The notes under the pieces were generated by a model that was not told the origin of the DNA, made no database searches, and saw only the letters and a program-made list of their open reading frames with translations. The translations under genes and the position numbers were made by a program. A stretch of 46,426 nt of DNA from Perkinsus chesapeaki ATCC PRA-425 (taxonomy: Eukaryota; Protista; Perkinsozoa). Shown in pieces: positions 6,517-45,235 of the stretch. Location of the stretch: contig JAAPAO010000254.1 in NCBI GenBank assembly GCA_013115145.1, positions 1 to 46,426 on the forward strand, read 5' to 3'. Within the stretch, counting starts at the first letter, position 1. The number at the start of each line of letters is the position of its first letter.

Positions 6517-8690
6517 TTAGTATCTTCGAACCACAGTTAGTTCACATTTACAAGAATCATATAAGCCCACCTTACCAGCCTGCGGCGGCGGTGGACACCT
6601 CCACGACTCTTCATCGCTAGGGCTCTCATCTTCGGAGGATACACCAACACCATCAGCGACTGGGCCCCAGTAGTGCCGTTCAACTGCGAAAATAAGCGTC
6701 ACTGCGCCACGAAATGACCCAGCATATAGGAATCATCACATGAGGATACTAGGATTGGCAAGAAGCGTCGACACGGACCATAATCGCTATCATCATCGTC
6801 TACGCTTGATTCTGATTCTGGCTGCTGAGAAGGCTGCATGTTACTCGAACTCCAGTTCTCTCGGCGACGCCATAGCCCAACTGGGGGCGGGACCGTTACC
6901 TATTCCATTTTGAAAACCGAAAGGTCCCTGGTTCGATCCCCACCTGTGACCAAGCGGACACTTCCTCCTCCCATGATTCATCATCGTCATCCGAGCTTGT
7001 GAATTCACTGTCATCTTCAGATTCCTCTGTATTATTGAAATGTTGTCTTACAAGTATACACACTCCGCGTCGATTCATTAATCGATCGAGGGTAAATCAG
7101 CTATCACAGCCGAGGCTAATTAAAAACAACATCCAACAAAAAGCACATAGCAAATGTCGGAAACTTTTAATTCTGAAACAATCCATTGTTATAATGATTC
7201 ATGTCGAGCTACGAGGTGGGGGCTGAAATGAAAGAAGGCTCTAACAATTAAATCATTATGAGGCTGATCGATGTTGTTGGATTTGAGGATAAGGCGGTAA
7301 GTGAAGCTCATCATACAGCTGCCATGTTTCGAGCTTAAGAACACCAACTTGTGTAGGTCAGAAGATGACCATGAAGTTCAAGTAATTTAAAATAGCCATT
7401 GGAAAATGTTATTTACGATTCGATATGCCCAAGGTGAGTGTCGAAGTGATCGTCACGCGCACCAAAATTACTCACATTTTCGTCATCATCTTGATGATAA
7501 TCTTCCATAAGATTTGCTGTCAACTCGGACAACACCGCTGCCGAGGGCCGTGGATCACCCTCAACCATCAACGGCGATAACCTGAATCTTGCAGTCTTGC
7601 TACATCTAGCATTTTCTCAACGCACTTATGAACACCCTCCGCATTCCTAATCAGTGGTGCTCGAGCAAGCATCTCCTCGTCACAACAATCAGAATCGGAT
7701 GACCACCAATCGTCTTCGGGAATGGCAGCTTGAACCTCCGCTGAAAACAGGCGAATCTTGCTAATCTTACCTGAACTTGAGTTTCCTCAACGCACCACTA
7801 TTGAAGGCAATCTTTGGTGTGCTCCCTGCTGCGGCTTCCCGATGCATCAATTCCTCTTTTTCCTTTATCTTCCTGTAGACTTTTCGTCCTAGGCTGTAGA
7901 GGTAAAGAAGCTTATCATCCAATGACTTCAATTCTCGCCACTCATAATACGGTATAGCCATTACCACATACCTAACATATGTCGTATCTTACCACCATCA
8001 ACCTAAGATGCTCACCCTTGCAGCTCCAATAGCCGCTGGTGTAACTTTGACACTGATGTTCTCCTAGTGCTATCAGCGTAAAACCTGTCACAACAAAAAT
8101 CTTGCAACCTTACCAGATCTTACATTTCCTCAACGCTGTATTACGCATAGGGCCCTAGACATTCAACCACAACTTCTTGTTTGTGCTGTTTCTCTTTCTT
8201 GTTGCTCTTTTTCTTATTCATCATGCCATCATCATCATCTGGCCGGCTCATCTCCGCCGGTTCGACTCCTCGAGGATCAGCATGCATGAGGATATCCATA
8301 CATTCATTATCGACCAGAGAACGACTCTTCACCCCAACTTTCATATGGTCTTTCAATAACCAGTAACTGATTCGTCACACGCCACGAAATTCAGCAAGCG
8401 ACATCGTCGCAGAGATCAGCAAGCCCGTCAGAACACTTTTGAGGCTATGAATCTCATTGTCACCAACAACTCATTAAAATGCTCGTCCACCGGAGTTGAT
8501 CAAATATTTTAATCATAGATAACAAATACAGATACAGCTTCCCGAGCACGAAGAGAACTCGATCGATAACTCTTTGAATGGCGGCGGCATCGAGAATGTG
8601 CAAGTAAGGAGAAGCATAGATAATAATAACCGATACATACAATCTACTGTGAAACAAGAAATAGCGGCCAAAGCCCACCAAATTTACCAC
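6517..8690 (-). CDS. Multi-exon hypothetical protein with acidic stretches; probably extends beyond these limits (exon-like pieces at about 6230-10400)
   Basis: Exons join in frame across GT-AG introns, e.g. EEEVSAWSQ|VTVPPPVGLWRRREN (intron 6900-6943) and DDSYML|VERHYWGP (intron 6684-6718). No domain recognised. Confidence 0.5.
6900..6943 (-). other. 44-nt intron that is the antisense of a tRNA-like 3' half
   Basis: Plus strand reads TTGAAAACCGAAAGGTCCCTGGTTCGATCCCCAC. On the minus strand it is GTGGGG...GAATAG, and removing it restores the frame (SQ|VT). Confidence 0.75.
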
Positions 8691-11247
8691 AAGTACAACA
8701 ACTTACATTTCGTTCGCCCACCTAGGACGTATCCTTCTCGTTGGAGATTTTGAATTGGCCATAACAGCTCCAAAGAATGCTCGAATATCATTCCCGAATG
8801 TATCATCATTGTACCTTACTGGGAGTAGTAGAAAATCTTACCACCACTTGCTATCTTACATTTCCTCAACGACACCAGGCTTGGAATATTTCAGAATTTG
8901 ACATGCATTTTTGAAAACTCGTAATTGAGCAAGCTGCCCTGCTGGCACTTGGTTACTATTAACTGAAAATGGAGAATGCTTAATTAAGGCGATTGGGTAC
9001 TTCAAAAACTGATTAATAGACATGAAACATATGAGTTTAATAAGAGCAGGAGGAGGAGGTTATATTATTCCACTGGGGGCATCGATAACCCTCGAGATAC
9101 TTGAAGCATTAAATCATTTACACTTAACAATATCAACCATCGACATTATATTAATATATATGTATTCATCTGTTATGTACTTTACTTCAATTGCTATATA
9201 CAAAAAAACCAATAAGTATTCTGATGCAGTGAATTTGATGCCAAGTATCTTTCTACAACAAACTCGAGATTCGAGGCAACTCGCAGTTTAGGATCCCGGA
9301 CGTGCCACTTTTCGAAACTAGGCTTCTTTGCTGCCCACTGCGAGCATAGAAATGCCAATTGGAATCCCTAAACCCAAAACCCAATTATAAAAGTTGTCTA
9401 AACACACGAGCATCCGTTCACCCAGACGACCTCTACTCGAATGTCTCACCTTCTTTGTTATGCAATTTCCGTGCCATGATTCCCATTGAAGATTTACTGG
9501 CGAGTGAGAATAGGTCTTTCAATACAGCAGATGTTGATGGTAACTCATCCGCGAGGGAGATCATACTGTCACAACTGCTCAATTAGTATCCAACATTCCA
9601 ACATTACCTTTGAGCCAGCAAAGAGAGTGACTGCATATCAAATGTGTCATTCTCTCTTCCCTTCGTTCGAGCATTAACTGAGAGCGGCGGCGGCGGCGGC
9701 GATTAAACAAAAGTGTGGTATGAAGCTCATGTAACTAATGCTTACCGTCCTCTAATTCCAGCGATCGCCTCAATCGAGTTGCTACCGCTTCCTCAGCATA
9801 CATTCGCATTTTCCTAGATCGCCAATCCAATCGAGCTAACGAGTTTAACCCGACGGCAAGGGTCTAAATGAATGGGATATAGAGGAATACATCGAAGAAC
9901 TATTCGGCAGGAAATTAATACCTATCACACTAAACAACGGAGACTTCGAGAACCAAACCTCATGAGGCTGGAGGAGTGCCTCGTCATCCTTGAGGATGAA
10001 TACTGTAAACTAATGATAATTTTATTAACATATTATTATGTATTATCTTCACTATTAATAAGATTAAGGTAATGTCGATAAGTTTCCTACTCCTACTAGC
10101 CAATGTTAGTCCTACAGTGTATGTCTCACCTCCTGCCGTTGGACGTCAGCGTATCTTCTGCAATGTCGAGTGAACGCACGCGAAAGAATCTTTAAAGATC
10201 CACTATGTCGTAAATCAACCTAAATGATTCTGTTGAGGATATAAGATAGGCTACATAGCATGATTCCGTTGGCCATGCGATAGACTTACCTTTGCCATTC
10301 CATGAAGAACTAAACCGACCAGAAAGGGCTCTGAGCCCCAGCGAAGTTGAGGGTTCTAAAATGAGACCAGAGTCCTACGTAGTATACCAAATAGAACAGT
10401 CTGCAAATTACAGATAGATATATACACCCCTCCACACAATTTCAGCAAAATCGTTTTTCCCAGATATCCGTGCTGTATAAAGGAGTTTGAGTCTCCAATT
10501 CACATAGGGTTATAACAATACTGAGTCTATTATAACCCCAAACTGTTTCAGGTCTAAACTCGTCTTGCTTGCTGCGAACTAGAAAGTCGCACCAAAATTG
10601 TGCCGCAAATTCTTAGCATACACAACTTGAATTCGACCTAAAAAATGTCTTATTTCAATGGGGAGGTACCTTTGCATATGATAAAACGGCTGGGTTCAAC
10701 AAAAAAGGGATTGTGTAGGTGAATAATACGACAAGCTGATAGTATCTCCAACTACTAATAGTTTGTAAAGTCTAATCTCTCCTCCTCTATTACTATTGCT
10801 TTCTCAATTTCCCTTCCAACTGCATTCCAAAATGGTGCATGATATATCCCAAAGACTCCAGCTGCATTACATGATAATGCTATTATTAAAGATGTCCATG
10901 TTGGTATTCGATCAGGCAGACATAACTAAACAAACATCACAAACATCAAACTGTCAGAAGGATCATCATATTCTCGTCTAGGAAAGTGAATCTACCATTT
11001 AGACCTTAGACCTTAGAGAGTTATTTCATCAGTCTCTTGTATAGTATGCGTAGTAGAGTCGGGTGGTGTTGAAGAGGAGTGTTATAGCATAGATAATATG
11101 GCTCATAGGGGCATCGATCAACTAACTGCTTTAGACTGCATTATTCAAGATTATGATATGTTCTCATATCTCGCCGTGAAAGCATACTCACTAAACCCTG
11201 ATTTGTATTTTATTTAGTATTGCAGTTGTATGGGAAAGTTCAAGGGT

Positions 11248-13109: not shown

Positions 13110-13235
13110 CATATAGCAGGCATACAGCTACACATAGCAGGCATACAGCTACATATAGCAGGCATACAGCTACACATAGCAGGCATACAGCTACACATAG
13201 CAGGCATACAGCTACACATAGCAGGCATACAGCTA
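13110..13235. repeat. Minisatellite, 6 x 21 nt (CA[T/C]ATAGCAGGCATACAGCTA)
   Basis: Six head-to-tail copies differing at only one position. Confidence 0.95.
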
Positions 13236-17695: not shown

Positions 17696-19993
17696 ATGCC
17701 TTTATTTATGATAATTCCGCTATTATCCAGGTACATATCATTAGCCTTGGATGATGCCCCTCGAGATGAGGAATCTAAGGTTGCAGTTGAAGTCATGCAT
17801 CGAGCTAGGATATGGGCTTCCAGATCTGATAGGGCTGTTGTCGCTCGCTTGCATGAGGATCATAACACTATCATGACAAGAAGTGACTTTGACGTCATTG
17901 CGGTTCGAACCAACGACCTTCCGCTGAGAAGCCCGACGACTCCCCAAGTGGTGAATCGAGTCCTTTCTCTCGTACGAGATGAGGGTGTTGGGCTGTTGAT
18001 TGGCATTAACGGTTGGGGATGGGAATGCCTCAATAAAGGGCATACTATAGTGGAGCATCCAATGCAATCGATCGCGCTTCAAGCTGGGATATGCTTTGAA
18101 GCTGAGTATCTTCCTGGTTGTCGACCATTGAGTGGTGATAGAAAGGTTACCCAATTGAGTGAAGTTAGTAAGGCATCGTTCCACACTTTGGTTCCTCTAA
18201 TGAAGGTTTGTGTGGTGCCTGGCAAGTCCACCCCAATCGGTGATATGGTACTAGGAGCAGTTGATCAACGATTACATCTTACAGATGATGACAAGAGGAT
18301 GATACGACAGCTGCTGGTAGATGGAGCTTCAGGGAGATGGAGAGCCGGCAATGGAGTTACCAAGACAAATCTTATGCAGCTCCTTGGAACATTTTTGGAA
18401 TTCGCACCACAGAAGATTCCTGGTGATGTCCGCTTGCAGGACGCTATCCATTATGCTGGCAAAGACTTCCCGGGTGTCTGTCCTGCTCCCGGTCAGGACG
18501 CATTGAGCCTGTCTGAAGGCACTGGGCAGGGAGAGGAGGTTGAAGTTCATTTCGAAGCTGTGTTGAAAGATACGCCCCATTCCTCGGTGACAGGGCGTAG
18601 CTTCGACCCTTGGATCAGTACAGGGGTGTATGCAAGGCCGGGGGAGACCATTCGAGTTAGTTTGGAATCTTTAATAAGATGCTCGAATGCTGAGGAGGCC
18701 GCTAAAGGGCAAGGCAGCCCAGTGCAGATGGCTGAGGTTCTGGCGGAGGATAGCGGGTTCAGGGTCAGAATCGGGTGCCATAAAGATGACAATTCAAAGT
18801 TGGACAGCTGGAGAAGGTGGCCTAGAATCTCTGCGGCGAGTAAAGATATCCTTTCTGGGAAGAATCTTGAGGTTGAGCTCACATCTGTGTTTGGTGGTCT
18901 AGTCTATATTGAGAGGATCCGTGAAAATGGAGTCGAGCCGAGTAAAGCAGGCAATGTGAATCTTAATGTTGATTCCATCCTGATGGCTTGCGCACGCGTG
19001 CAAGGCGGTGTTCCGGCCCTTTGGTGGTGCAGTGGTGTTTGGATGCTCGGTGGTCGTCCTGCGGAGAATCTCAAAAACCTTCCGCGTGCGGAGAATGCGT
19101 ATCCTCCTTGGGGTGAGGTCCAAGCTAAGCATCTTATCTTGACCCTTCCCACCCGGCTCCTCCTTGACCATGCTCTCGCCCTTAATGATGGTTGGGCTGA
19201 AACTGTCGCCGATTTTTGGGACAGAGTTGTGCGCAGTCATTGTGACATCGCCTGTCGACCAGTCTGTGGCGAGGAGCGTTTCCGCTTCGTATTTGATGTG
19301 CAGATATCTGCTGGCTGGATGCATAGTGGTTATCCTGTAATGGCACACGAGAAGCCGACAGCCGAAGATTCCTGCGCGGTTTGGGGGCCGGCGAATCTTC
19401 GTGGCGCGCACAGCCCTGGTAAGCTTCTCACGGACGGCGATTGGGGCCTCTTCCATGAGCTGGGGCATCATTTCCAGCGAAGGAGATGGACCTATAAATC
19501 CTGTGGAGAAGTTACGGTGAATCTGTTCAGTATGTACAGCATGATGACAATTATTGGTAAAAAGATTCCTACCAAAGATATGTCCAATGTTAAGGAAGGT
19601 CACCAGAAGGCTGAGGATTTCATAACTCAGAGGATCGCCTGTGAGGGAGGGGGACAGAATATCATTTCGGCTGCGCAGTGTCGGAAGCCTATAACTGATG
19701 CGTTGGATCAATGGAGCCCTTGGGTTGGTCTCACCATGTACGTCGATGTCATCGAGACCTTCGGCTGGGAGCTGCTGAGGAATGTTTTGAGGAGTTTCGA
19801 GCAGGATGGCACCTACGACCAGCAACCAGATCCCACTGAGTGGTGGGCGAGAGTGAGCAAAGCCTGTGGGGAGGGATTGTCACTTTACTGTCGGGTTTGG
19901 GGTGTACCAGTCGATCTGGATAGGATGGATAGGGAAGGTGGTGATTCGAGGGAACAATGGCTGCCAAGGTGGATTCAAGAAAAACTTATGTGA
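17696..19993 (+). CDS. Peptidase M60 / enhancin / TCAF(FAM115)-like zinc metallopeptidase, intronless
   Basis: 765-aa ORF with WISTGVYARPGE, VRIGCHKDD, FGGLVYI, PWGE, DVQISAGWMHSGYPVM and GDWGLFHELGH (HEXXH), followed by GEVTVNLFS (gluzincin third ligand). Confidence 0.92.
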   Translation: MPLFMIIPLLSRYISLALDDAPRDEESKVAVEVMHRARIWASRSDRAVVARLHEDHNTIMTRSDFDVIAVRTNDLPLRSPTTPQVVNRVLSLVRDEGVGLLIGINGWGWECLNKGHTIVEHPMQSIALQAGICFEAEYLPGCRPLSGDRKVTQLSEVSKASFHTLVPLMKVCVVPGKSTPIGDMVLGAVDQRLHLTDDDKRMIRQLLVDGASGRWRAGNGVTKTNLMQLLGTFLEFAPQKIPGDVRLQDAIHYAGKDFPGVCPAPGQDALSLSEGTGQGEEVEVHFEAVLKDTPHSSVTGRSFDPWISTGVYARPGETIRVSLESLIRCSNAEEAAKGQGSPVQMAEVLAEDSGFRVRIGCHKDDNSKLDSWRRWPRISAASKDILSGKNLEVELTSVFGGLVYIERIRENGVEPSKAGNVNLNVDSILMACARVQGGVPALWWCSGVWMLGGRPAENLKNLPRAENAYPPWGEVQAKHLILTLPTRLLLDHALALNDGWAETVADFWDRVVRSHCDIACRPVCGEERFRFVFDVQISAGWMHSGYPVMAHEKPTAEDSCAVWGPANLRGAHSPGKLLTDGDWGLFHELGHHFQRRRWTYKSCGEVTVNLFSMYSMMTIIGKKIPTKDMSNVKEGHQKAEDFITQRIACEGGGQNIISAAQCRKPITDALDQWSPWVGLTMYVDVIETFGWELLRNVLRSFEQDGTYDQQPDPTEWWARVSKACGEGLSLYCRVWGVPVDLDRMDREGGDSREQWLPRWIQEKLM

Positions 19994-21174: not shown

Positions 21175-23653
21175 ATGTCATCTGATTCTCTTCCTTCGGG
21201 TTGGACCCGATACACTACCGATGATGGTGAGGAATATTTCTTTAACGAAATTACCGAAGTAACTCAATGGGATCGGCCCACTCAACCGGCAACACGAGCC
21301 AGCGGCGGAGTAGGGAAGAAGAAGAATAAGAAGGATAAAGGAGAGTAATAATAACAGCGATGGACTACTGGAAATGCCCGACTAATAATAACGACTATGT
21401 GCTGTAGACGATTTGGATGGTAATTTGTAATAATAAAATATTATATATTGGTTAATTGATCACATTCCGGCAAACGGTTCGAGGGGGATTAGGTTGAACA
21501 AAGTAATTGGGTATAGAGTGGCTTTGCATCAGGTATGTCCCGATCGATGCTGGAGCTTTGATGGACGAAGGTTTCGAGGCTGCAGATGATAATGACACAA
21601 GAGGGAGTATGCCTCCGTCTCAAGGTAATTACGTGGCGCGTGACTGGAGCGGATAACTCGATGAAATGTTCGTGTGAATTGTGGGAAATTGGATGAGATT
21701 AAGATAAGGCAAAAACAATAGAAGAAAATTCAGAACAGAAATTTAACTCGGGTTTTTGGGGTTTTCGGGTTTCTTGGGAAGAAATTTCTTCATCAGGTCC
21801 GATCAAATACGACGTTCCGATGGTAAACTTCGGAAATGATTCAAACACAACAACAGAGGGGGAGGAGACGAATCCAAATCGATCAGCCGATCGATCCAAA
21901 GTCCTCAACCTCGACGGGCAACTAGATTCAGCTCCGAAGCGTTCAACTGGGGCAGAAGATGCCCCACAGTCCTCATCATCATCAACTGGAAGTTGGCTTT
22001 GGTCTAAATTGACTTGTGGACTGACATTAAGTTATATACAGGATAACTTCTTTGATGTAATAGGTCCCGGGTTCGATCCCTGACTGAAGTGTTTTCATCA
22101 TTTTTAGGTTACATCTCGCGATGTTCAGGGTCGTCTTTTCCTTGCAATGTGGCCATACAGGTGACTAAAATTTCCCGGAATCTCTGCAGATTTTTTTATT
22201 TTTTTTCTGTCAGGCTCTCTCTACTATCGCCAAGCTCATCCCTTCATTTGCCGTCTCCCGGTGGTTCTTCTCAAACCGGCGGTCGAATCGCTCAGTTTTT
22301 CGGTTCACATTTTGCGGATTCTATCCAGTTGTTATCTTCATATAGGAGCAATCCTGACCTCTGGGGTAATCGAAAGGTCCCGAGTTCGAATCCCGCACCT
22401 GTCATCAATTTTCAGGCCCGTTTTGGATCTGTACAACTGCTGTTATTTTTCTCACCGCGACCGCTAATTTCTCTCGTCAATTATTGGGCGGGAATGAAGA
22501 GAAAGGTCATATCACAGATTACACTTTAGCGGGTAGGTCGTGGGTTCGATTCCCGACTCGTGCATTTTTCCTCTAAAAATATTCCATACAGCCTTTATGA
22601 TAAAGGTAAAAAATGTACGACTAATGATTTGGTAATTTACGATGCTTTTTACATTCCTTGTGTATACCGCGATACAGACAAACTGCCGGCGAAGGATTTC
22701 CTGAATAAATAATTGAATGCGGAGGAATGAGTGTGTTGTATTTGTGGTTGGTGTCAGGCACCGCGTGGTTTGTCCTATTTGGTGTCATGATACTCGGTCC
22801 TTTAATCACATTAGGGCTTCTTGTATGGGCTACGAATCAGTCGGGGAACTCTGAATCGGAAGAGTCTGGCTGGTGGACAAATCTTCCAGCATGGCTTCAA
22901 CCGGGGACAGGACGACACAATACCTATGTTATTGATGATAGCACTACTAATACAATTGATAACTATGCTGTCCCTCCAGCTCATGGTCAGACAGGTGGTG
23001 GGAAGACATCTCTTTGGCTGTTATTAACTAGTGCTTATGGTTACAGTATGTCGGTGATGCTGCCAATGTCAATATTATGGATAGTACCTATTGGATGGGT
23101 TAAGACATTGACCTGTGCTTTAGGGTAAGAGGAGGAATAAGTGAGAGATCGAAGCATAGGAACTAGGAAGAAAGTTGCGAAGCTTTCAGAAAATAACAAA
23201 CTAGAAGAGTAGTTTGTAAAAATATAAAATATGACTCTATGAATGCTGTAATTTATGTGGGTAATTATTGGTATTAAACCATCTGTAAAGTGAGCAGCTG
23301 TAGTGGCTTTATCAACTCTGTTTCGGATGCATCCACCGAATTTCGGTGTTTTAACATAGTAGATTTAATAAGCAGCTGGTTGATGTTATTTCAGGTTCCT
23401 AACTGCGATGGTTTTCCTTTATATAACCTTATTACGTACAGGAGGAGTTGATGGTACTGCGTCTGGTGATTCACCAATACTTCAGAGATTGGGTGTCACC
23501 ACTTCAAATGCGAAGACTAGGGTACAAGTTGCTTTAATAACTGCTTTGGTAGCTGTTGTGATGGAGGGAGGTATCTGGGCTTCATGCAGGTAAGATACAA
23601 AACAGGTCAAGAATGTTACTAGTGATTTCTTTAGGTTATATTTTCTCGCTTGA
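21175..23653 (+). CDS. WW domain + Yip1 domain (YIPF1/2-like) membrane protein, multi-exon
   Basis: N-terminal WW domain LPSGWTRYTTDDGEEYFFNEITEVTQWDRP. Spliced Yip1 motifs FFD|VTSRDVQGRLFLAMWP, NPDLW|GPFWICTTAVIF and SAYGYSMSVMLPMSILWIVP. Ends CR|LYFLA-stop. Confidence 0.85.
22057..22107 (+). other. 51-nt Yip1 intron with tRNA-like T-arm and T-run
   Basis: GTAATAGGTCCCGGGTTCGATCCCTGACTGAAGTGTTTT...TAG. Removal gives FFD|VTSRDV. Confidence 0.85.
22366..22415 (+). other. 50-nt Yip1 intron resembling a tRNA 3' half
   Basis: GTAATCGAAAGGTCCCGAGTTCGAATCCCGCACCTGTCATCAATTTTCAG. Removal restores the conserved PDLWGPFWI. Confidence 0.9.
22533..22757 (+). other. Yip1 intron starting with a tRNA-like T-arm/3' end plus TTTTT (acceptor 22757 preferred, 22591 possible)
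   Basis: GTAGGTCGTGGGTTCGATTCCCGACTCGTGCATTTTT lies directly after the donor. Acceptor 22757 gives DYTLA|GTAWFVLFG. Confidence 0.75.
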
Positions 23654-23699
23654 ATGCGGATAGTATTAAAGCTGGCAGCAGACTAACTGTACTTTTCTG

Positions 23700-24275: not shown

Positions 24276-24295
24276 CTAGTGTCGTAGAGGCCGTC

Positions 24296-26017
24296 ATGAA
24301 AAGCCCACTGTAATTTCGTGGCGCGTGACGTTTATGTAACGGTGGTGTTAGGTTCTCTGAGATACCATTGCCTGGAGGGATTTATTATGATAAAGAGAAA
24401 GGAGAATATCGGAACAAGTTCACCAACGAGAAGGTAAATTTTCGAACTCGAGAAATTAGCTAAATTGCGGCAGCTGTTGGCAACAGCCTGTTGTCATTGT
24501 AAACAGCGCCACAATTTGTCTAATTTTCAGGCTGTTTTCGATTCCCTTTTGTCTCTTTTAACGAAGTCGCCACATAACTTCTTCGAAAGATATCAAAGGT
24601 TGATCACAACTCAACCCAAACTGTTGGCGTACTTCGCAGATTTGGCGGCAAATGGCGATCCCGAGGTGACTTTGAGAAAATAATCTCGATTACGTCCCCA
24701 ATAGGTACAAGCGTTCGTTCAAGGAGCGTCACGCGCCACGAAATGCTATAAGATTGACGGTCAGCCGGCTGACGTCACCAAGAACTGTAAAGTTGTTGGG
24801 CATCGGAGAGTTTTATGGATTCAACGAGAGGAAGGGAAATCCAATGGATACTTTTCCGAAGCACAAATGCGACGGCGTGACGCGGGCTTGTGGCACTCTT
24901 TAGTGGGAAAATATGAAAAGGGAGGCGGAGCGAAGCAGCAGCAGTTGATCGATGCTGTTAATGATGATGAATATGATAAAGCTGATGAGAATGGAAAAAG
25001 GGAGATTAGGAAAGCTTATATTGTTGGTAGGTGGGAATGGCCATCGTGACACATGGCATCCACTGTCCACTTTAATGATTATTGTTAATTGTTTCATTTT
25101 GGGCATATGTCCTTGGTGAGAGTTATCTCACCAAACGCCACAGTGCCGTGGTTGAATGACCATACGATCCGATGATGATGATCCAACTTTTGAGCAACAC
25201 AACCAGGACGGCAGATCCTCGCGGGAATAAAACGATTATCTCGTGCGGACAGTAGTTACCGAATATAATGATCATGCCTTCCGGTAACCACCACCACGAC
25301 CACGGTGATGATATCTGCTAACCATTGGCCGTATTGTCGTCGGACTTCACTATTGTTGTTGTTCGATTCACATTGCTTTACAACTCATCTCGCTGAGCTA
25401 AGGACGGGGGGCTAGCTGAAATGTAATGACTTTCTTTCGAAGTGTCGTTCACGATTTGGAGTATCTCGAGGTTGAGCGTGCGAGATACACTTAATGTCAG
25501 ATCAAATGGAAGCACATCTTCATGATGGAAGTGCACCACACTATAATCCTAGACTCGAGCCTCTCAGTGATGAGTTCATTACCGAGGCGATCGACTTGGC
25601 CGATTTCGACGCTGAGGCTGCAGACTGTCGAGAGGAGCGAGTCCAAGCGCTCAGAAAGACTATGGAGGTGAGAATGAAGTTTGTTGGATAACTCTACGGT
25701 CTTATACGGGATGAAATAAATTTACAAAAAATGATACTTCCCATATCTCATTGGTCCGATAGAAAGTATAGAGGTATACGTCAAAACTGGGGGCAAGAGT
25801 TGATCTCTTCTTTCGATATATTTTATTAATTTTCAGGCGCGCTTCCTCGATGGTCGAGATGGCCGATTTATCGATTACACCGAAATTGATGATGATGAGG
25901 AACTGGAAGCTTTCATCAGTCGAGAAGCGGAATTGGTAACCTTGGTCAATTTCGTGGCGAGTGAATGTTTATCTATTACAGGATATCCAAGAGAAGTATT
26001 TTGACGAATCTGAATAA
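24296..26017 (+). CDS. CCDC97: CCDC97 (DUF2052)-like protein, multi-exon
   Basis: Spliced motifs FFERYQRLI, GYFSEAQMRRRDAGLWHSLVGKY, EERVQALRKTME|ARFLDGRDGRFIDYTEIDDD and DIQEKYFDESE-stop. Confidence 0.8.
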
Positions 26018-26160
26018 ACGTCACGCGCCACGAAAATCGTGTTAACATTTGCGAAGTTGATATACTTGTTACTCTACGTACTGTCTCAACCGCATAATGC
26101 CGAGTTGACCTAAAGATTTTTAATTTTGTGGCGCAGTGACTTTTTACCATCATTGCTGCC

Positions 26161-27199: not shown

Positions 27200-29370
27200 G
27201 AACACGGCCGCCATCACCCCAACCGTCGTCTCCCTCTTTCCACAATAAATAAGTGTTATCTGCAGTCCTTTGAAGGAAAGTGTACGCTGACAGATGGCTG
27301 ATGGCCTATCACTATAATACCGATATCCTTTGCTAACTTATCATCAAGTAAAGTGCGACGAATTCAACAGTCTGAGCTCGCGCCTGCTAATAAACTACTA
27401 GTATTGTCTTACGTAAAACTCGGTATTGTTATGAGTAGTAATACTATACAACAAAATACAAAATAATTGATATGAATGAAAGCATAATCATGCAAACGAC
27501 CTGCCAACGCATGGATTCGTGAACCCTTTCAGTTCCGGATCGTTCAAGACTTTCTTTACCCCAACAACAGCTGCGAATATAGCGCTTGTTACCACGACCA
27601 CCAAAAGGAGAAGAATCAGCCCAGATTGGCGACCTTAATGAGATACTGGCAAATCTGTAGAGATGCGCGGCTTACCATGTCTTTCGACAGCCTTTGTGAT
27701 ATAAAGTGTTCCAAAAAGTGCTCCAAGAAAGGCTAGGATTCCATAAAGCAGAGTTTGGTTACCAACGAGGTGACCTGAATTGGAGAAGACTCCCCTGAAT
27801 TGCTCGATGTCATTCAATTCCGAACTGCACCGCCGTTGGGATGAACAACATAATGGATGCGAATCTACGACGAGCTCTTCAGACTATCAATACTTGAGAC
27901 TCAATTTCGCTAATTTGTCGAGAAATAAGAGCCCACTGTATCACACCAATAACGAGCTTGCACAAAACAATATTCTCACCCTCCATTGCCAGTTGCCCCG
28001 CAGCTATACTGCTGGTCATAAGCACTGCTATGGCTGATGTCGCTGTTGCCACCGTTGGCTTCTTACCAAGGCTCAACAACAAAGGACCGAATATCATACC
28101 ACCACCGATGCCGATAACAGCACTAGCCATGCCACCAAATAGACTTAATAAAGAATAGGCCATTATAGAAGGTCGATGATGAGGACGATGAGGGTGCTCA
28201 GGAGTTGACACTTCACTTGGAGCAGAGGAGACACGAGTGCCTTGTCTGAAGAAGTTTCGGACTAATGTATAAAAAAAACTTTAAGATTTCGTAATAGCTT
28301 AAATCGATTCATAATAATTAAAAGTGAATATTGAGTACTCCAGTGAGCTATATTATGTCAAGTTACCGTTTACTTTTCTTCTTACATGAATGATATTATC
28401 ATTAATATTCCAACTGCTGCGGCCATCACCATCCAATAGGTCGAAGAGCAGATCTCGAGACCTGCCGTCGCTACCAATTCGATATTTTTAGGTCTTACCG
28501 ATGACTGAGGGAGTCCTATGGCCTCCGAGAATGAGCGTGATTAGCCACACCATCGCCCAGGAAGCCACCAACTCTCCTCCAGTGGCAAAGGAGCTTCGCT
28601 CCGCCTGCACGACTAATTTATTCAATGAATTGTTCTCTGTTAGTAGCGGTCTGTTCATCGAGTTACGATATTCTTTTCTCCTGCCAAAGGTTGTGGGTTC
28701 GAATCCATGGCGGGCATTTTACCTTGCTTTTTGGAACCTCCCAAAAGCTGAATAGGCAACCCATAGAAGAACGAAGACTGTTAATAAAAGAATGAACCAA
28801 TCTGGGCAGGACTTGCTGATCATCACACCTGACATGGGTTGAGGTGAAGAGTAATACTACTCGGTGGAGTGGAGTACTTTATAATAAAGATGGGGATAGC
28901 TGGAAGAGGAGAGGCTTTGTTAATACTGGGTTGTCAATTAAGAGGGAGTTCGAGGAGAAGAATAGTTAAGTCCAGAAATTAAAACCAAATCTATTTAATT
29001 AATTCAATATCGGTTTTATGATTGAAATGTGATGAATCCCAGCAAAGACACTTCTCGAATTTGGCAATGGAATCTTTTATCATTCTCTCACCGATTATCG
29101 TTCCAGCATTAGCCGCCGGCACCATGACAAGGCACGCTCCATAATCAACCAACCCAGACCTGACAAAAGGACCGCCGCTGCGCCACAAAACTAATACGAT
29201 CATTGCAACCTGATATTAACCATAGCTGCCGCCACTGCAGCGAAGGTTACGAGAGTGACCGAAAGTGCCGCACTTTGATGAGCACCGAGTGGAGCCGTAA
29301 GACCGAAAATGCCACTGTTAATAAGGGGAACGAATACCCCTCCACCGCCGATACCTAAAAGAGAGTATGA
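27200..29370 (-). CDS. Sulfite exporter TauE/SafE family membrane protein, multi-exon (ends approximate)
   Basis: Two GIGGG motifs (GIGGGGVFVPLI; SAVIGIGGGMIFGPLLLSLGKKPTVATATSA), plus LVDYGACLVMVPAANAGTIIG, CPDWFILLL and many transmembrane segments. Confidence 0.85.
28681..28722 (-). other. 42-nt intron that is entirely the antisense of a tRNA-like 3' end plus TTTT
   Basis: Plus strand CTGCCAAAGGTTGTGGGTTCGAATCCATGGCGGGCATTTTAC; minus strand GTAAAATG...TTTGGCAG. Unspliced it gives an in-frame TAA; spliced it gives FQKA|RRKEY. Confidence 0.9.
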
Positions 29371-30666
29371 CCAGGCAGCAGCTTTTACTAAAAGTTAGAT
29401 GACTCTCCCGAAGAAGCGTCGTAATCCACCCGGCAGCGGCCTACTGAGGTACCCGCTCTGCCCGAAAAAGTCGGGACGGCCCGTGAGAGCGCCTGGCGCT
29501 GCCCGGGCGATGCCTGCCGCCTCCTCTAGTCAATTGTGTTGTTACTAATCCTTCAGCCTCACCGTATTACCGAGTAACTGTTACTCTAGTAAGCTATAGT
29601 AGTCTAGAAGCTGCCCGAGCAGGGCACTGTTAGTACTGTGGCAAAAGTTTGGCCTCGTACCGCGACAATTATATACATTTAATAGCGTGTGTCATTCCCG
29701 CTATAATGTTCCCATCGTAGAGACTCTGCGGCAGAAACTTTCTCGCCAGGATTTTTTGTAGGCTGAGGGCGGGAAGGCCCAGCCAGCGGCATGCCGGGCA
29801 GCCATGTGCGCTCGAAAGGAATACGACGCTTTCTAAAAGCCTTTTAGAAGCCTTGAAGCCTTCCTTAATCGATAGACGCCATGATAGTGTTGTATGATAA
29901 AATGGAGCATTATATGAATCGCTTTGAAGAGGAGATGTTGTGATTAGCTACGCTGAATGGTTCATTCCGCGGCGCCACGGAGGCCTAGTTTCCGCAACGG
30001 AACACATCCCCTCTGACCTCGACCTTACCTGCCGATATGCACAAAGCGCTGATGGAGGCGAAGATGAGTCCAATGATAGCTTCTTTCAAGGGGGAATCCT
30101 TGGCAACTACAAAACAGTCTTTAACCTATTTGAGAATGTTTAAATAGCTCCGTTGAAGTATTATCAATAAATTAAAGACTTAGTCTACAACTAGTCTTAA
30201 ACTTGTCGGACTGTTTAATCATCTGCGTAAGTTCATCACCACTCTTTATATCAACATTATCAATTGGAGGCAGTGGAGGTTGCTATATCAGCATACTTTT
30301 TGCAATTGGCCATTTGTACACGTAGTTGTATTAAACAGGAGTTGGTCGGCGGCGGCGGTGTTGGGAGTATATTGTCCTACTTTCTATTTCTTCTGTATCA
30401 TCGTTGATGACAGCAGCTGCCGCTGCTAAGCTGATGGTTAGGACAATAAGAATACGATACTTCATATTAGGATACCACTACGAATGGTGACATCTAATTT
30501 CGCGGCGCTGCGGTCAGTTAATAACCATAGCGCATATGTAACGTAGCAGTATACAATTTTAGTGGACTTCCTCAAACCTTCACCGCGCCACAAAAGTAAC
30601 CAACTCGAATCTTACCAACATGTGAAACTGTAATTTTACGTCAGCACTGAATTCTAGACGTTTTAT

Positions 30667-33200
30667 TTATCCAAGGCCAATCTTACGGAACTTCGCTCCG
30701 CCGTTGCCATTGCTCATTTTTCCTGGATGTTTCCCAACCACCCTTCGGGAACATATCTTTTCCTCAATCCACTCGACCAATCGTTTCTTCCGTTTTTCTA
30801 TCAAACTCTCCCAATCGCCTTCAAGAGGCAGCAAACAGGAATACTTCTCCACCATCCACCGCGATACTTTTCGGACTTCCTCATCGAAATGTTTCGAAGG
30901 CCAAGACACGAGTCTTCGATCCTTGCAAATATGCGCCACGAAATTCACTACCGCAGAATCGATCGATACATCTGCCCGACTCGACGACGACGATGTGGAT
31001 TGCTCGGGAGGCCGCTTCTCCTGGTAATTTTGTGGCGCGTGACGTTGCTTATCCCTAGGTGGCGCTCCCAAATAGCTGAGTCCCTTGAGGGGCTGCCTAA
31101 TATTTTTCTGATAAACTGTTTGTGCTCCTAATAACTTAGATAACGAAAATCTCCCGGGTGCGCTCGCCACATTGGTATCCTTTTTCGGCATATCTTCACG
31201 CTTCAACCTCAGCTCGAAGTCTGCAGCCTGCCTAAGCGTATCCTTCAAGCCTTCATTTTCAGAATCGCTCGAAGACTTCATCGGTCTCCACTGCACACTT
31301 TGCTTCACCCTCTTCATTCGCCGACCCCGTCTGCCCACCGTACGTGCCTTTCGCTTAGAGACTGCCCCGATCAACAAGTCTGGCTCTGCCTCCTCCGTCC
31401 GGCCGATTTCAACATCAACTCCTGCAGTTTTCAACTTGGCAGCTGCCGGCATTTTCCCTCCACTCGATAGCCTTGTCATCCTCAATGCTCGAAAACTCAA
31501 CGGCACCGAATGGACCGAGGGCCACAATGAAGGGCCCAATTTCATCAGTAATGAGGAAACCTCCCCAACTTCCATAGGGTTCAAATTTGTCCCCGAAATA
31601 TCAAGTTCGCTCAAAAACCAAGCCAATTTGGGCTGCTTCGCTCCGCTGATCTTTTCAATTTTTTTACCATAACTGATTTGAGCCGCCTTCAAAGACCTCA
31701 TTATTTTACACACGCTTTTTGCAGTCACAATCGTATTGTCTACAAAACTCACCTTGAGCAGGCCTCGTCCGTTTTCTAATACCACACTTTTCTCAACTTG
31801 CATATCTTTCCAGGATAACATTGCCGTCACAACGCCCTTTTTAACCTCCCTCACCAACCCACTTTCATCTCCATTGTGCCCCTCGACCACGCTGTCGGTG
31901 ATAGCTATCTTGATGGTGACCTCTGAAGGGTTTCCTGGCGCAGTGACGCTGATATAAGTCGGCAACACAGTCTTGGGCTTCGGCTTTTCCACAAGAGCGA
32001 CTTCTTTCTCATCCTCATCGCTGCTACTCGTACCAAGTTCAATGATATCTTTGGGTTGACCCGCGCAAGATTCATCCAAGGTCTCTTCAGGTACACTACA
32101 AGAGCTCGGTGAAGTCTCCGGTGAAATGATATCCTCTTCATTTGATGAAGTCGGCGAAGGAAGCAGATGACTGTGTCGCGGACAGAATACCTGCCATCAC
32201 CAAGAATCGAACCCGCGACCTCTTCGGTTCCCCTTTCACATTGCTAAAACGTTTGCCGCAGCCGACTGCCCAGTCTACTTCACTACGATTCAACCATTCA
32301 ATCGTTTCGTTGGGCCACTCGATGGAAGCCATCAGATAAAACATCAACGAACAATCTAAAGGCTGTTCACTTCACGGCGAATGTACGTTCTTAACTAAGG
32401 CGCGATTGTCATGTCAACACTACGACAAGAAACATACCACCTCGCCGCCGACCCCTCAGAATCTTTCAGCGACGACGAAACTATCGGATGTTCAATCTCG
32501 GTGGAGCGCGGAAATAAATCATTTTCAGTGTCATCAGGAAATTCCTACTATCGACTTACCTCCCCATCAGGCACGCAGTCGTATCCGGCGCAGAAGGGAT
32601 GGAATGGCGCGTCACAGGTCTTCACATTCGATCCACTTTTCCCCTTCCTCTTTTTTGCAGGTAACTCCGGTGCGTCACACAACAGCATTGTCCCTCTCTG
32701 GTCTGCTGGTGCTGCTTGTATTATCGTATTACCACATATTGCACAACGGTAAGTATCCAAAGACTCTTCAGATGAAGAAGAAGAAGACATGCTGAAAAAA
32801 TCGAAACGTAGAACACTCAAACGAACTGAGCTGGGTAGATCTATGGTAAAAATCTCATTTCTTTGAGGGAGCTCGAGAGTGAGTCGGGCTTGGAAACTAC
32901 CGGAGCGATTAAACGGAGAGTAAAGTAGTAGCATAGACTAGAATTGCTAGTGCGACTGATATCCCTCATTCCCATACTACTTATCATCATCATAAAGTGT
33001 ATCAGCCTGTTTAGCTTCCTGCACTTGTATAACTTGTTCTATTATTAATTGCCATTTGCCTATTGATCCATCTCCTCCTCCTCCTCCTTTATTCAGACTA
33101 TATTCAGCAACGTAGTGTATTGTGGCACGACAACTCGGACAGGAATTCTCCCTTTGAATACTCCAGTGCTGACCATCAATAATAAAACCATCGACCAACC
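30667..33200 (-). CDS. RING + PHD finger protein (PHRF1-like architecture), multi-exon; 5' end unresolved
   Basis: RING end WSIQRENSCPSCR; PHD CAICG...LLCD...CDAPFHPFCAGYDCVPDGE|VFCPRH; long 470-aa terminal exon ending in a helical region reminiscent of an SRI domain (inference). Confidence 0.72.
32191..32232 (-). other. tRNA-like 3' half forming the 3' end of the PHD intron (intron 32191-32559)
   Basis: Minus strand GAACCGAAGAGGTCGCGGGTTCGATTCTTGGTGATGGCAG|GTATTCTGT. The terminal A plus the next G form the acceptor AG. Confidence 0.7.
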
Positions 33201-34309
33201 AGATAAACCATTTTTGCTGTTTCTATTCATTACTTATACAATTTATGTAAGACTACTTCAACGAAGATTTGTGTCAAATGCATTTCGCGGCGAGTGACTT
33301 TCGACAAAGGCATGCGTGGTCGGAAAACACAGGGGACAAAAAGGTGCCAACAATGCAATGTAGTTTTACCGTAGAAGTTTTGCGTGTGACATAAAAGATA
33401 CGTTTTGATGCGCTTTGGAGATCGTTACTGCTGCTGACACGGATAGATCCGAAAGACTATCATAAAGTTGATAAATCCACTTATATATCTCATAACCCGA
33501 GACAGCTTGATTCCCAGATCAATGTCCAATACAAGTTGATTAAAATATTATAAAGTTAGTATTGCTACTCATTAGCAACTACCTTATAAGAAGGAAACCC
33601 CGAAAGATGAGGAAACTGAGCTACACTTGTAACAGTTCCACAGAGATTACGGTGACAAATTCTTAAGTATAAGATATTCCCTCCACTATTACCTCCAAAC
33701 ATCCAACATGAAAGGCATGCTCACAGCAATCCATTTTAGCATAACGAGGAGGCCCGTCTATAGATGCCATACCACACTGGTCTTCATTAGAAAATATCTC
33801 GCGGCAAATGGGACACTCGAGCGGGGTGCCATTAGCCGAGGCGAATCCAGCTTCAACGAAGGAAAGCTGAAATGGAAAAATAATGAAAGGTGCTGAATTG
33901 AGCTAGTCAGCTGAGCAGATATAGGCGAGAGAAGAGGAGGGATATGCAATTATATATAGAAATGATTACACAATGGTCGAGATGGGTATTAAGATACCTT
34001 AATTCCTCAAGGTAGGCCTCGAGAGAGAGTGAGAATGCTGAATCAGTAGCCTATATTGAAGCCTGTATTGTGAGGGTCCATAGAATTAGTGTCCAAAGCA
34101 GCCCCTTATGTGGTATTAGCACTCAAATGCTTGAATTGGCAGCTTGCCAAAATACTCACCTTAAAGATATCAAATGAAAAATATCTGATGGAGCTGATAA
34201 CGGCTGTGCATGCATTTCAAATAGTACTTATAATGTTAGTAGAGAGATGAATGATAACCACGTAAAGGTGAGCCCCATGCCAGTACCTCTTGTTTGAAAT
34301 GCCCTTTAC

Positions 34310-42689: not shown

Positions 42690-45235
42690 TAAATTATAAA
42701 CAAAACCAAATAGGTAATACATTTCCAGTGAGAATAACGTAGCTCGACCTTCATGTCTTGCCAGCAGTTGCCGTTTAGTCCCGAAAATTGGCATTCTGTT
42801 CCGAGCTCACCTTGACTGCCTCCACATGACACCGGACTAACCGCACCGCTTTTAACCCACAAGTAATCCAATCGTTTCGGACAAGACGGGACATCCTGAA
42901 CACCTTATACCTTTCACGCGCCACGAAATTCCCTACCTGGTCGCTTGTTACACCATATTTCGCCAGAGTTTCATCGCTCATCTCTCCCCAATTCCCCTGA
43001 TAACTCGGCGGGTGCGGCAACCTCTCCTTATCGGCGTGCAATTGCCAAACATCCTGGAAGCCCGCATTGCCGAGGAAGTCCTTGACCCTTTCATAAACGC
43101 TCGTTGGTTTATTCGTTATTAGACTTTCTGTTTCTTCAGATGACAGAGAGGTGCTACGGCCTGTTCGAGTTGGGGAGGGAGGGCACCGAATGGAAGACTG
43201 AAAAGGGTCGAAATTCATCTGTGGCACTCGAAACACACTGCGCTGTCGGTAAAGTCTTCGGTTTGTCTATGTGCAAATAATGCGATAGATAGGTAGTCTA
43301 ATATAGAATCAACGATACACCGCGTAATAACATTATTGACCTATTATTTTGTTAATATATAACTTGATATTATTTATTTTACTACCAAACTTTATTACTA
43401 CTGCCACGTCGTCTATCGGCCCAAGTATAATCACTATTAAATAGAGACTTGAGTATGAATTCCGATGCGGACTACTTAAAGTATAGTAAAACCCGACATA
43501 TGAATTGGATGTCGAATACTATACAGACGATACCCGATTCACTCCATAAGCAGTCGAGTAAGCCATATCGACCCAACAGCTCTCCCCTTCCTCTATCACC
43601 TTATTCCTCTTCCCCTCCTCCATCATCTTGTCTCGTCCAGTTCCATCAATATTCCAATCACCAGTCATAACAGCTGCCGCAACACGCAAGCCTTTATTAG
43701 CACATTCCTTCTCCAGATACGCTACAACGTCCAATACGACTTTCTAAAATTTACAAATCAATTATAAAAATGCCTCCATGAAATGCTACCAGTTGTGCGA
43801 GCTTGACATCGGAGTCGTGGCCTGCATCGAGATGGGTCGTAGCGACTATCACCACCTGAACAGCGTAGATCATCGACCGGGAAGTGCAATGATGATTGAC
43901 AAAACCGTATTTAGGAATCCTAAGCATTATTATCGTATTTAGGAATTCAGCCCAAGCAAAAGACAGGCTTTTAGGATAATTAAGCCATTTATCATACTTA
44001 GTACGTTCGAGGTACCGTTGGATAAGGAACTCATAGATTATCGAATCACATTGAATACCACAGAACTTCTAGAGCGGAAAAATGGAAGCGGTTACTGTTG
44101 GAAGCTGCTACAAGCTGATCACATTTATCGATCCCTGGCATTATTAATATTACATTAATATTATGCCATATTTCCTACTGCTAATACTGTATTACTTTAA
44201 TTAAGCAGCATCAACTTCCCACAAGTAAAGCATTTAATGATCACTTCAGCTGTACGAATCTATCTTATACAAGAATTTCTGTCGCTCGAGTAACACTTCT
44301 TGGGCTCGCAAGTACAGGAAAGCCGGCGAGGGTGGATAGATACCGCATTGAGCCTCAGTGATAGAAATCGAATAACCACCATCCATAAGGTATTACATCA
44401 CTCCCTCTATCCAAAACAACCCCAAGGGCTCCTTTAGACGCCATGGCATCCTCGCCAGTGGCAACAGTAAACCTATTAAATCTGACAAAAAAAAAGAATC
44501 ACCGAGGATCGAGCCAGAGACCACTTACTTTTCCATGAGTATCGGCCACCTCGACATTATAATCAACCCCGAGTCCAAGAACTTAGTGGGTGCCGAACAC
44601 TCACAAACATGTGTGCCAAAAGCTTTAGTAGAGTATTTCAATTGGGTATCTATCAACCATTATATCATTTATTATAATCGATTTCTCCTTTTCGTCGCAC
44701 AGCAGCCACTTAGATAACGAAACGCACCCAAAAGACCGTCTGGTGATACGGACACTCCCACGGAGTTATATACCTCTAAGCCCTTAATAAGCATGAAGGT
44801 GACACATACTGTTGAAAAGGCTACACATATCCTAATATTACTAAGATTCATGTGCAAAACGAAGTAGAGGAGCGCAGCAGCAGCCTCCACCATAAGACGG
44901 CTCAAACCCCAACGGGCCCCATGACCTTAATTTTGACAAATTCCCTTTGAATTTCAAATCCATAGAATTTACCGTATGACAAATAGTATTTTTATGCCTA
45001 ATGATTAGCAAGACCATTATTACGGTTCTGAACATATCGGACGACTTCTCCTCTCGCAAAGAACCTCCCACAAAATAAAGCATTTATCATGCTTGCAACA
45101 GCCGACTGCTGATCCGTCCACGCCTCTTGAAGTGTTATTACCTGAACACGAGGAGTTCTCATCTACAACACCACCAAATTTCGTGATGATAACTTGACGG
45201 TTTCGATAATGAGCGCATAGACTTCTCGTGTACAT
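42690..45235 (-). CDS. Endonuclease/exonuclease/phosphatase superfamily, sphingomyelin phosphodiesterase (neutral SMase)-like, multi-exon; ends approximate
   Basis: Spliced motifs KFLDSGLIIMSRWPILME|KFNRFTVATGEDAMASKGALGV, AAVMTGDWNID, GFQDVW and PKRLDYLWV. The terminal SDH motif was not located. Confidence 0.8.
44482..44528 (-). other. 47-nt intron with a degenerate tRNA-like T-arm and a T9 run
   Basis: GTAAGTGGTCTCTGGCTCGATCCTCGGTGATTCTTTTTTTTTGTCAG. Removal restores SRWPILMEKFNRF. Confidence 0.75.

Follow-up and report, generated by a model that had tools for sequence, protein, structure and literature searches.

An asymmetric 18-21-nt word in tiny introns, intergenic DNA and coding exons of Perkinsus chesapeaki: a predicted protein-docking site

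The word that recurs in tiny introns of the stretch analysed here (contig JAAPAO010000254.1 of Perkinsus chesapeaki ATCC PRA-425, 46,426 nucleotides, in the following called the window) is a real, discrete and asymmetric cis-element with sharp edges. That it represents an old, maintained, bipartite docking site for a protein on DNA, predicted to consist of two YGTGRC half-sites after AATTT, has in our judgement about an even chance of being correct. Such a predicted site is preferred over an intron-making mobile element because the copies are found in introns (in either orientation), in intergenic DNA and in coding exons. The original prediction had left two options, a family of introner-like elements or a site bound by a splicing or DNA-binding factor, and it is the binding site, as a predicted one, that fits the data.

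Definition, copy number and clustering of the motif

The window was scanned on both strands for the word (B)AATTTYGTGGCGCGTGAC(G/T)nT as an 18-mer with up to 3 mismatches, which gave 10 matches compared to 0.01 expected; the 12-mer core, allowing up to 1 mismatch, was found 7 times (0.04 expected), in agreement with the earlier suspicion that the word is too frequent for chance. Genome-wide, the exact 12-mer core is present 342 times in P. chesapeaki (4 for the reversed-word control), and at up to 2 mismatches the motif has about 865 copies (1 for the control). Among 59 copies, the information content is restricted to motif positions -1 to +20, drops to zero at -2 and past +20, and the flanks are random; the motif is 18-21 nt long. 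After an AATTT tract come two 6-bp direct repeats that match each other imperfectly, YGTGGC at motif positions 5-10 and CGTGAC at 12-17, with their starts 7 bp apart, and G13, G15 and C10 are invariant among 20 copies with an imperfect core. The asymmetry is specific: among the words that fit the palindromic template GTSRCGCGYSAC, the motif word alone has 342 sites and the other 15 together only 100; a palindromic dimer site was rejected, the symmetric variants showing no enrichment. A metagenome scan for the motif in other organisms returned 51 single matches, approximately the estimated chance level, and in the literature the word was found only within primers.

The window is a local cluster of motif copies, with 9 copies at up to 2 mismatches versus 0.96 expected (P about 8e-7). 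Pairs of exact copies within 10 kb numbered 7 (2.3 expected), and neighbouring copies tend toward the same orientation. An abundance of introns was rejected as the cause of the cluster, since the density of high-scoring tiny introns (per kb) is lower in the window than at the other loci.

Copies in the window, host introns and exonic sites

Table 1. Copies of the motif and partial matches in the window, with strand and local context
Position	Strand	Match	Context
6698..6716	-	one-inserted-A variant CATTTCGTGGCGC[A]GTGAC	sense, inside 35-nt intron 6684-6718(-)
7452..7469	-	2 mismatches	GTGAGT (7470-7475) just before it; no tiny intron
8374..8391	-	1 mismatch	either in weak 36-nt intron 8367-8402(-) or in 5' flank, 30 nt ahead of ATG at 8344
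21627..21644	+	1 mismatch	directly after GT 21625-21626, WW/Yip1-like gene
24312..24329	+	exact	sense, directly after GT of 42-nt intron 24310-24351(+), score 13.9
24728..24745	-	1 mismatch	antisense to plus-strand gene 24296-25049; overlooked by the original prediction
25948..25965	+	2 mismatches	sense, in 46-nt last intron 25936-25981(+), gene 25506-26017
26020..26037	-	1 mismatch	intergenic; overlooked by the original prediction
29180..29190	-	partial motif TTTTGTGGCGC	in 50-nt intron 29160-29209(-), TauE-like gene
31026..31043	+	exact	antisense in coding exon of minus-strand FOL47_004479; overlooked by the original prediction
33281..33298	+	weak, 3 mismatches	found in the window scan; overlooked by the original prediction
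42913..42930	-	1 mismatch	sense, in 41-nt intron 42896-42936(-), score 16.3

The tiny motif-bearing introns that had been proposed at 6684, 24310, 25936 and 42896 were recovered, each keeping the frame upon removal (Table 1). The first has GT..AG boundaries, and once it is removed, one open frame of about 240 nt spans the junction; the third, also predicted by the gene model, is joined as ..REAEL|DIQEKYFDESE, with the stop codon 11 codons later. The junctions quoted previously for the second and the last (MKSPL|FSEIP and SDQ|DVPSCPKRLDYLW) were reproduced as open reading through ..MKSP|LFSEIP.. and ..VTSDQ|DVPSCPKRLDYLW.., respectively. Several motif host introns in the window come after short first exons.

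Other introns of the original prediction were not upheld or only in part. The GTGAGT at the donor proposed for 7475(-) is present, but no AG was found within 120 nt, and the copy probably encodes part of the C-terminus (..NFGARD..) in the minus-strand gene model 7413-8125, which terminates at a stop at 7413. The GT at 21625 exists as well, but a tiny-intron acceptor does not, and the copy is at best the possible start of a 172-nt intron (21625-21796) in a weak gene model (score 13). For 8367-8402(-), the frame does stay open as proposed, but the donor is poor and the intron score (5.3) is below threshold; a single-exon gene model (8141-8344) lies next to this copy. The boundaries given for a 32-nt intron at 29178-29209 were wrong, the junction MVNI|RSGLVDYG of the NCBI protein (P0014) setting the acceptor at 29160, and with only about 11 nt of the motif this site is no family member at up to 3 mismatches. 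Among the overlooked copies, 24728..24745(-) may be either intronic or exonic (its antisense intron score of 6.8 is below threshold, and the gene model reads ..SRATK.. as coding), and 26020..26037(-) lies antisense to the genes on either side, 3 nt past the stop of one (26015-26017) and 124 nt short of the ATG of the next (26161), and forms an inverted pair with 25948..25965(+).

The genomic contexts were studied in a sample of 285 kb with 67 non-tandem copies (the self-trained gene finder, which under-predicts genes, and the coding-potential strand calls, which are weak, were used only with controls, and homology searches were run with single ORFs or exons as queries). About 40% of these copies are located in ordinary 36-55-nt GT-AG introns, and the remaining ones are intergenic or, in at least two cases, situated in coding exons. 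With 19 copies in sense and 8 in antisense tiny introns among the 67, the motif is neither confined to introns nor always co-oriented with the host gene. Four motif introns were confirmed by conserved protein junctions, in a PP2A-like gene (C287:1465-1503), a DDX41-like gene (L042:4994-5040), a trehalose-phosphate synthase gene (L002:1485-1529) and a Sec13-like gene (in L049, directly following the minus-strand exon 9318-9581, which ends in ..AQEGGQ), and the DDX41-like one carries an antisense copy (..DVVQE|VEYVK..). The median length of the motif introns (45 nt) equals the genome norm of 45 nt, their rank is spread along the genes, and the motif offsets to both splice sites vary widely; a branch-point role of the GTGAC end was rejected, its distance to the acceptor ranging from 4 to 38 nt. 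In most of the sense intron copies a GT precedes the motif by 2-12 nt, so the statement that the motif sits just inside donors holds for these and fails for the antisense, intergenic and exonic copies; donor proximity in a 45-nt intron is largely a matter of geometry.

The intron calls (19 sense to 8 antisense, P=0.05) and an independent coding-track test, in which the motif strand was the coding strand in 37 cases and the opposite strand in 20 (Wilcoxon P=0.016), both indicate a sense bias. Sequences downstream of the motif were more coding than those upstream, with a P of only 0.05, and two tests for proximity of the copies to ATG or ORF starts were both null; with this borderline trend and the two null results, a promoter-proximal element was rejected.

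Two exonic copies could be compared with P. olseni. The exact copy at 31026..31043 encodes RHAPQNY in FOL47_004479 (the ORF is 100% identical to the annotated protein), and the P. olseni orthologue, which is 60% identical, has RHAPQTY at this place with more variable residues on both sides. The second (L001:1495, sense) belongs to a gene whose P. olseni orthologue is FOZ61_005959; the peptides compared are IFVARD and NFVARD, of which NFVARD is what the canonical word translates to, and here the residues flanking the site are conserved too. In neither case is there an alignment gap at the motif-encoded residues. Because the motif-encoded peptides are kept in P. olseni, the exonic sites are probably older than the split of the two species, a conservation seen at two coding sites only and confounded by protein constraint.

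A predicted docking site and its alternatives

In the mechanism that we propose, one sequence-specific protein would dock on the double-stranded motif DNA, probably via at least two DNA-reading modules, and the motif would be maintained at roughly 865 places in the P. chesapeaki genome. Tiny introns would be permissive hosts only, in which an 18-bp word fits without disturbing a protein in a gene-dense genome; because they tolerate such a word, many copies would come to lie in the variable interior of 40-50-nt introns, next to the donor. Both the binding of a protein and its binding to DNA rather than RNA are what we infer, and the effect of docking might be on transcription or on chromatin organisation. 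The sense bias of roughly 2:1 suggests that the putative bound complex is preferentially oriented with respect to transcription. Tandem AP2 domains are encoded at two loci (C1080:52990-53373 and C73:3427-3813), and by analogy the tandem-AP2 proteins are candidate binders and a lead. Some observations speak against a docking site: the copies preferentially have the motif on the coding strand, a bias that an RNA-level signal predicts more naturally; a clear preference for gene starts, as in a promoter element, is missing; and about 865 copies of so specific a word without a copying mechanism are unexplained.

The word might instead act at the RNA level, recognised in the pre-mRNA by an RNA-binding protein such as one that regulates whether a subset of tiny introns is spliced or retained, the antisense and intergenic copies being inactive or acting on other transcripts. 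We regard this as unlikely, although it would accommodate the sense bias (about 2-2.4:1 over the intron calls and the coding-track test), the GT shortly ahead of most sense intron copies, the co-orientation of adjacent copies and a part of the motif (AAUUUYGUGG) which we take to be loosely similar to an Sm-site word. About one third of the intron copies are antisense, however, including the homology-confirmed DDX41-like intron, the peptide of the antisense exonic copy is kept in P. olseni amid a more variable stretch, and the splice-site offsets vary at both ends. Well under 1% of all introns are estimated to carry the motif, and therefore it is not a general splicing signal. Acceptor-only contexts (19% versus 15% background) are not enriched, and a trans-splicing outron signal was rejected. 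Complementarity to U6 is absent as well, the species' own U6 matching at most 10 of 18 positions, so that a U6-derived or U6-complementary word was rejected; an origin from 5S rRNA was also discarded (best match 10 of 18 positions), and no Rfam families were found at the motif loci.

It is improbable, in our view, that the copies are remnants of an ancient insertion, mobile or templated (an introner-like element or the end of a MITE), which once spread, sometimes made introns and is now neutral or partly exapted. Point mutation is a difficult route to about 865 copies of so specific a word, the motif introns are of normal size and not 20 nt longer, as would fit introns born with the motif, and in four of five opposite-orientation pairs the two copies face each other, AATTT ends outward. 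The introner-like family of the original prediction is nevertheless not supported, because the similarity ends at the motif edges (18-21 nt) and terminal inverted repeats, target-site duplications and a common intron body are missing: a check of the flanks found no such repeats or duplications, and the intron remainders outside the motif differ in length and sequence. The inverted pairs share nothing inside, and with no duplications a MITE with the motif as its terminal repeat was rejected. Variable offsets, both orientations, normal-length host introns and the intergenic and exonic copies also disagree with it, and the coding-exon copies show no gap relative to P. olseni. Furthermore, 99 copies are exact 18-mers amid fully randomised flanks, which neutral remnants would not retain. 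Known introner elements (Micromonas, Aureococcus, Amoebophrya) are similar to each other along the entire intron and have terminal repeats, both direct and inverted (PMC7789003). The Perkinsus motif resembles them as a repeated sequence in many introns of unrelated genes, often beside the donor and mostly co-oriented with the gene, but differs in that 18-21 nt are common, terminal repeats are absent, offsets vary, both orientations occur and copies exist outside introns.

Two further readings, both very improbable, are an E2F site based on the GGCGCG in the core and a degenerate A box (TFIIIC) formed by TGGCGCG-TGAC. The E2F-type resemblance noted earlier does not hold, since the word TTTSSCGC is absent from the motif, which reads TTTYGTGGCGCG and thus has three extra bases between TTT and GGCGC; a six-frame scan gave no match to E2F_TDP (PF02319), a scan whose control gave no signal, exons being split by tiny introns, and no CAMTA (CG-1) domain was found when the genome, with its exons so split, was scanned. 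The A-box consensus is TRGCNNAGTGG with an invariant A14, and it is usually paired with a B box. Two variants in the window, GTGGCGCAGTGAC at 6698-6716 and GTGGCGCAGCGG at 29180-29190 plus the following bases, are presumably A-box-like and are the only ones to restore the A, whereas the main form, TGGCGCGTGAC, lacks it. B-box-like words are about as frequent near the motif as in the background, 6 of 76 copies having one within 300 nt, and a scan for tRNA genes that covered the window and 43 sample loci found none; an origin from a tRNA gene or A box with B-box pairing was rejected for the lack of both tRNA genes and short-range co-occurrence.

Related systems and significance

The closest known system is SPE2 of Plasmodium falciparum, where the tandem-AP2 protein PfSIP2 recognises a bipartite motif, composed of two imperfect 6-bp repeats, only with both of its domains; 777 sites were predicted, and SPE2 lies in subtelomeric arrays (PMC2829057). 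Like SPE2, the Perkinsus motif is bipartite and highly specific, with two imperfect 6-bp direct repeats and a GTG core, it has hundreds of sites (about 865 here) with local clustering, and Perkinsus is an alveolate relative of Plasmodium that encodes tandem AP2 domains. The two differ in the half-site ((T/G)GTGC(A/G) in SPE2, YGTGRC here), in the gap between half-sites (4 bp versus 1 bp) and in location, SPE2 being subtelomeric and not in introns or exons. With the extra-TFIIIC (B-box only) sites the motif has in common that it is a short putative protein-docking word in non-coding DNA, tiny introns among it, but the word is a different one and there is no short-range co-occurrence with B boxes. 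The motifs of intron-mediated enhancement in plants are short, degenerate and dependent on promoter proximity. They are likewise a sense-biased signal in transcribed DNA near donors; the Perkinsus word, unlike them, is long and exact and its introns are spread in rank along the genes.

Perkinsus chesapeaki is a parasite of clams. How perkinsids and the related dinoflagellates control genes in a sequence-specific manner is, to our knowledge, almost entirely unexplored. With its roughly 865 near-exact copies, the 18-21-bp word offers an unusually clean bait with which the putative binding protein might be fished out, and this binder could then serve to map a regulon or a chromatin feature in a shellfish pathogen. 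The analysis also corrects a misreading, in that repeated words in tiny introns are here no evidence of intron-creating mobile elements. A broader scenario, which we consider quite doubtful, is that tiny introns carry several long, exact cis-words as a genome-wide system of docking or RNA marking, with some introns kept for the word that they host and the sense bias due to co-transcriptional reading; if true, this would be a new reason for the retention of introns in a compact protist genome.

Abundance, clustering and shape of the motif

The motif was searched for in the whole assembly (41.7 Mb, 3,544 contigs), and its predicted frequency beyond chance was upheld by shuffle and reversed-word controls in both the window and the genome. 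Window matches to the 18-mer AATTTYGTGGCGCGTGAC number 10 at ≤3 mismatches (0.01 expected from shuffles), and those to its 12-mer core 7 at ≤1 mismatch (0.04 expected). The assembly as a whole contains 342 exact copies of the core, compared with 4 of the reversed word, along with 99 exact 18-mers (0 in the control) and 865 copies at ≤2 mismatches (1 in the control), or one copy of this last class every 48 kb. Nine copies at ≤2 mismatches fall in the window, where 0.96 are expected (Poisson P ~8e-7, or ~7e-4 once ~900 windows are allowed for), and 7 pairs of exact copies lie less than 10 kb apart across the genome (2.3 expected). The composition of the window is not distinct (GC 44.2% vs 46.0%), nor is its share of canonical tiny introns unusually high. 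Two minisatellites, with units of 55 nt and 69 nt, carry one copy per unit.

The 285-kb sample analyzed further combined the window with loci surrounding listed cores, taken in list order: 3 kb each for the first 30, and up to 10 kb each for the twenty that came next. Among 59 non-tandem copies, information content was high at positions 0 to 17. Beyond these, a weak signal was confined to -1, where A is avoided, +18, with G or T, and +20, with T, so the unit is 18-21 nt long with sharp edges. It is built of AATTT followed by the imperfect direct repeats YGTGGC and CGTGAC; across 20 copies with imperfect cores TTT, C10, G13 and G15 are invariant, and positions 1, 7, 12 and 17 tolerate change. 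A palindromic site was rejected: 16 words fit GTSRCGCGYSAC, yet the motif word alone accounts for 342 of the 442 sites.

Motif copies in tiny introns

The feature census is based on a small, home-made gene and intron model, trained on the 285-kb sample, which under-predicts genes. The introns it settled on measure 40-48 nt (median 45), with the donor AG/GTRRG and a T-rich acceptor YAG/G. For each copy, the best GT..AG pair on each strand was scored by its splice signals, its length and whether the coding flanks stayed open, and introns were called above the 97th percentile of reversed-sequence controls, a threshold that 9.5% of random positions pass per strand. Tiny introns were called around 19 of 67 non-tandem copies in the sense orientation (motif on the strand of the host gene) and around 8 of 67 in antisense. 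The placement in very short introns noticed earlier is thus an enrichment over background (40% vs ~19%, P=4e-5), although the share of copies in introns may be close to the introns' share of non-coding DNA, since a word of this kind can seldom be accommodated by coding exons. Four of the introns are backed by protein knowledge, their excision restoring textbook junctions.

Motif-bearing introns measure 36-75 nt, with the same median (45) as all introns. The position of the motif is not fixed relative to donor or acceptor: in sense introns the motif begins 2-31 nt (median 8) past the first base of the GT and its end is 4-38 nt short of the intron end, and the corresponding distances for antisense copies are 5-18 and 4-23 nt.

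The sense bias is real but partial, about 2:1, as both intron calls and open frames favor the motif strand. The calls alone gave 19 vs 8 (P=0.052) and, with manual calls in the window, 23:9 (P=0.02); an independent comparison of the two strands, based on coding-like open frames up to 800 nt away, favored the motif strand at 37 copies and the other strand at 20 (P=0.016 by Wilcoxon test, 0.03 by sign test). A preference for gene starts was not established. Coding signal on the sense strand was 0.29 downstream vs 0.22 upstream (P=0.05), and several copies in the window, judged by reading the sequence, follow short first exons; predicted ranks of motif introns run from 1 of 6 up to 9 of 20, and no enrichment near long-ORF starts was found in the sample.

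Copies outside introns

Members of the family can also occupy exons, and at least two exonic sites are probably older than the split of P. chesapeaki and P. olseni. Protein searches used single ORFs or exons as queries. The ORF holding copy 31026 matches the annotated protein at 100% identity and has a P. olseni orthologue at 60%; the copy encodes RHAPQNY, which reads RHAPQTY in P. olseni (RPAPQTY in one isolate) among more variable residues. If the codons are shared, the N-to-T change would reflect the AG variant often seen at motif position 1. The copy at L001:1495 encodes IFVARD, in place of which P. olseni has the canonical word's own translation, NFVARD; this retention is weak evidence of motif conservation, the flanks being conserved too, and a degenerate neighbor (L001:1363) is not kept in the P. 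olseni orthologue.

The NCBI model FOL47_004479 fuses the product of a 539-aa ORF with TauE-like membrane exons. This fusion is probably an annotation artefact, as ..GAKFRKIGLG is the end of both the P. olseni orthologue and the gene model built here. Elsewhere in the window, an ORF is 100% identical to FOL47_004477, the annotated form of which has ~95 extra N-terminal residues from upstream exons; its P. olseni orthologues are 68-76% identical.

Locations and hosts of the features (bare coordinates, window; L, sampled loci; G000:C, contigs of the P. chesapeaki genome)
Feature	Location	Strand or motif orientation	Details
Motif intron, PP2A-type phosphatase			junction ..WKMLTD/LFDYFPLTALVE..
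Motif intron, DDX41-like helicase		antisense	junction ..DVVQE/VEYVK..
Motif intron, trehalose-phosphate synthase			junction restored
Motif intron, Sec13-like WD protein			junction restored
Motif copy	26020	antisense to both flanking genes	3 nt past stop codon, 124 nt ahead of next ATG
Two facing motif copies	25948-26037		54 nt apart, straddling stop codon 26015-26017
Acylphosphatase-like gene	starts at 26161		124 nt downstream of facing pair
Motif copy	31026	antisense	within coding exon of FOL47_004479
FOL47_004479	28900-32332	-	NCBI model, 685 aa
Motif copy	L001:1495	sense	in 504-codon ORF; P. olseni orthologue 58% identical
FOL47_004477	17696-19993	+	765-aa ORF; M60 (enhancin-like) peptidase
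Motif minisatellite	L006:1501-1750 (G000:C17)
Motif minisatellite	L018:1495-2095 (G000:C191)		broken by N gap
Second U6 match	L032:314-412 (G000:C2248)
5S rRNA spacer	L105:1-500 (G000:C2141)
tRNA-like T-arm, decayed	L038:3430-3540	-	24 nt after motif copy
Tandem AP2 domains	G000:C1080:52990-53373	-
Tandem AP2 domains	G000:C73:3427-3813	+

A putative docking site

The motif is most economically read as a putative site on DNA at which a sequence-specific protein with several modules docks, because it is long, exact, asymmetric and sharp-edged, and because it clusters, occurs in both orientations in confirmed introns and has some exonic copies. The sense bias counts against this reading; action at the RNA level is the alternative, and a rather unlikely one.

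An introner-like family, one of the options first proposed, did not hold: introners are similar across the whole intron and have terminal repeats (PMC7789003), whereas the motif copies show neither. E2F, whose sites the core had been thought to resemble, and CAMTA are not supported as binders, and inverted motif pairs are not MITEs. No Rfam family covers the motif loci, and an origin from U6 or 5S was rejected, as the species' own RNAs contain neither the word nor its complement. The second U6 match agrees with the full U6 gene (L031) over only its first ~64 nt, and is a truncated or chimeric copy; the 5S rRNA spacer is packed with short tandem repeats of the GACAACATTG and TGTGCAATTTTGC types. 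Scans of the window and of 43 sample loci found no tRNA genes, and B-box-like words lie no closer to the motif than expected, with no short-range link. The decayed T-arm at L038 includes GGTTCGAAT, a B-box word, as well as a run of T, and ARAGORN called no tRNA there. A metagenome scan gave single matches only, at about the estimated chance level, and in the papers searched the word was found only as a primer.

Two P. chesapeaki loci encode tandem AP2 domains, the two domains ~250 nt apart at each. Binding of the Plasmodium tandem-AP2 protein PfSIP2 to the bipartite SPE2 element, with 777 predicted sites, depends on both of its domains and on each 6-bp half of the element (PMC2829057), and SIP2 also binds TGCA-N4-6-GTGCA (PMC11927625). 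The P. chesapeaki motif differs from SPE2 in spacing and half-site, so the likeness is one of analogy, not membership. The products of both P. chesapeaki loci are candidates for binding bipartite words in DNA.
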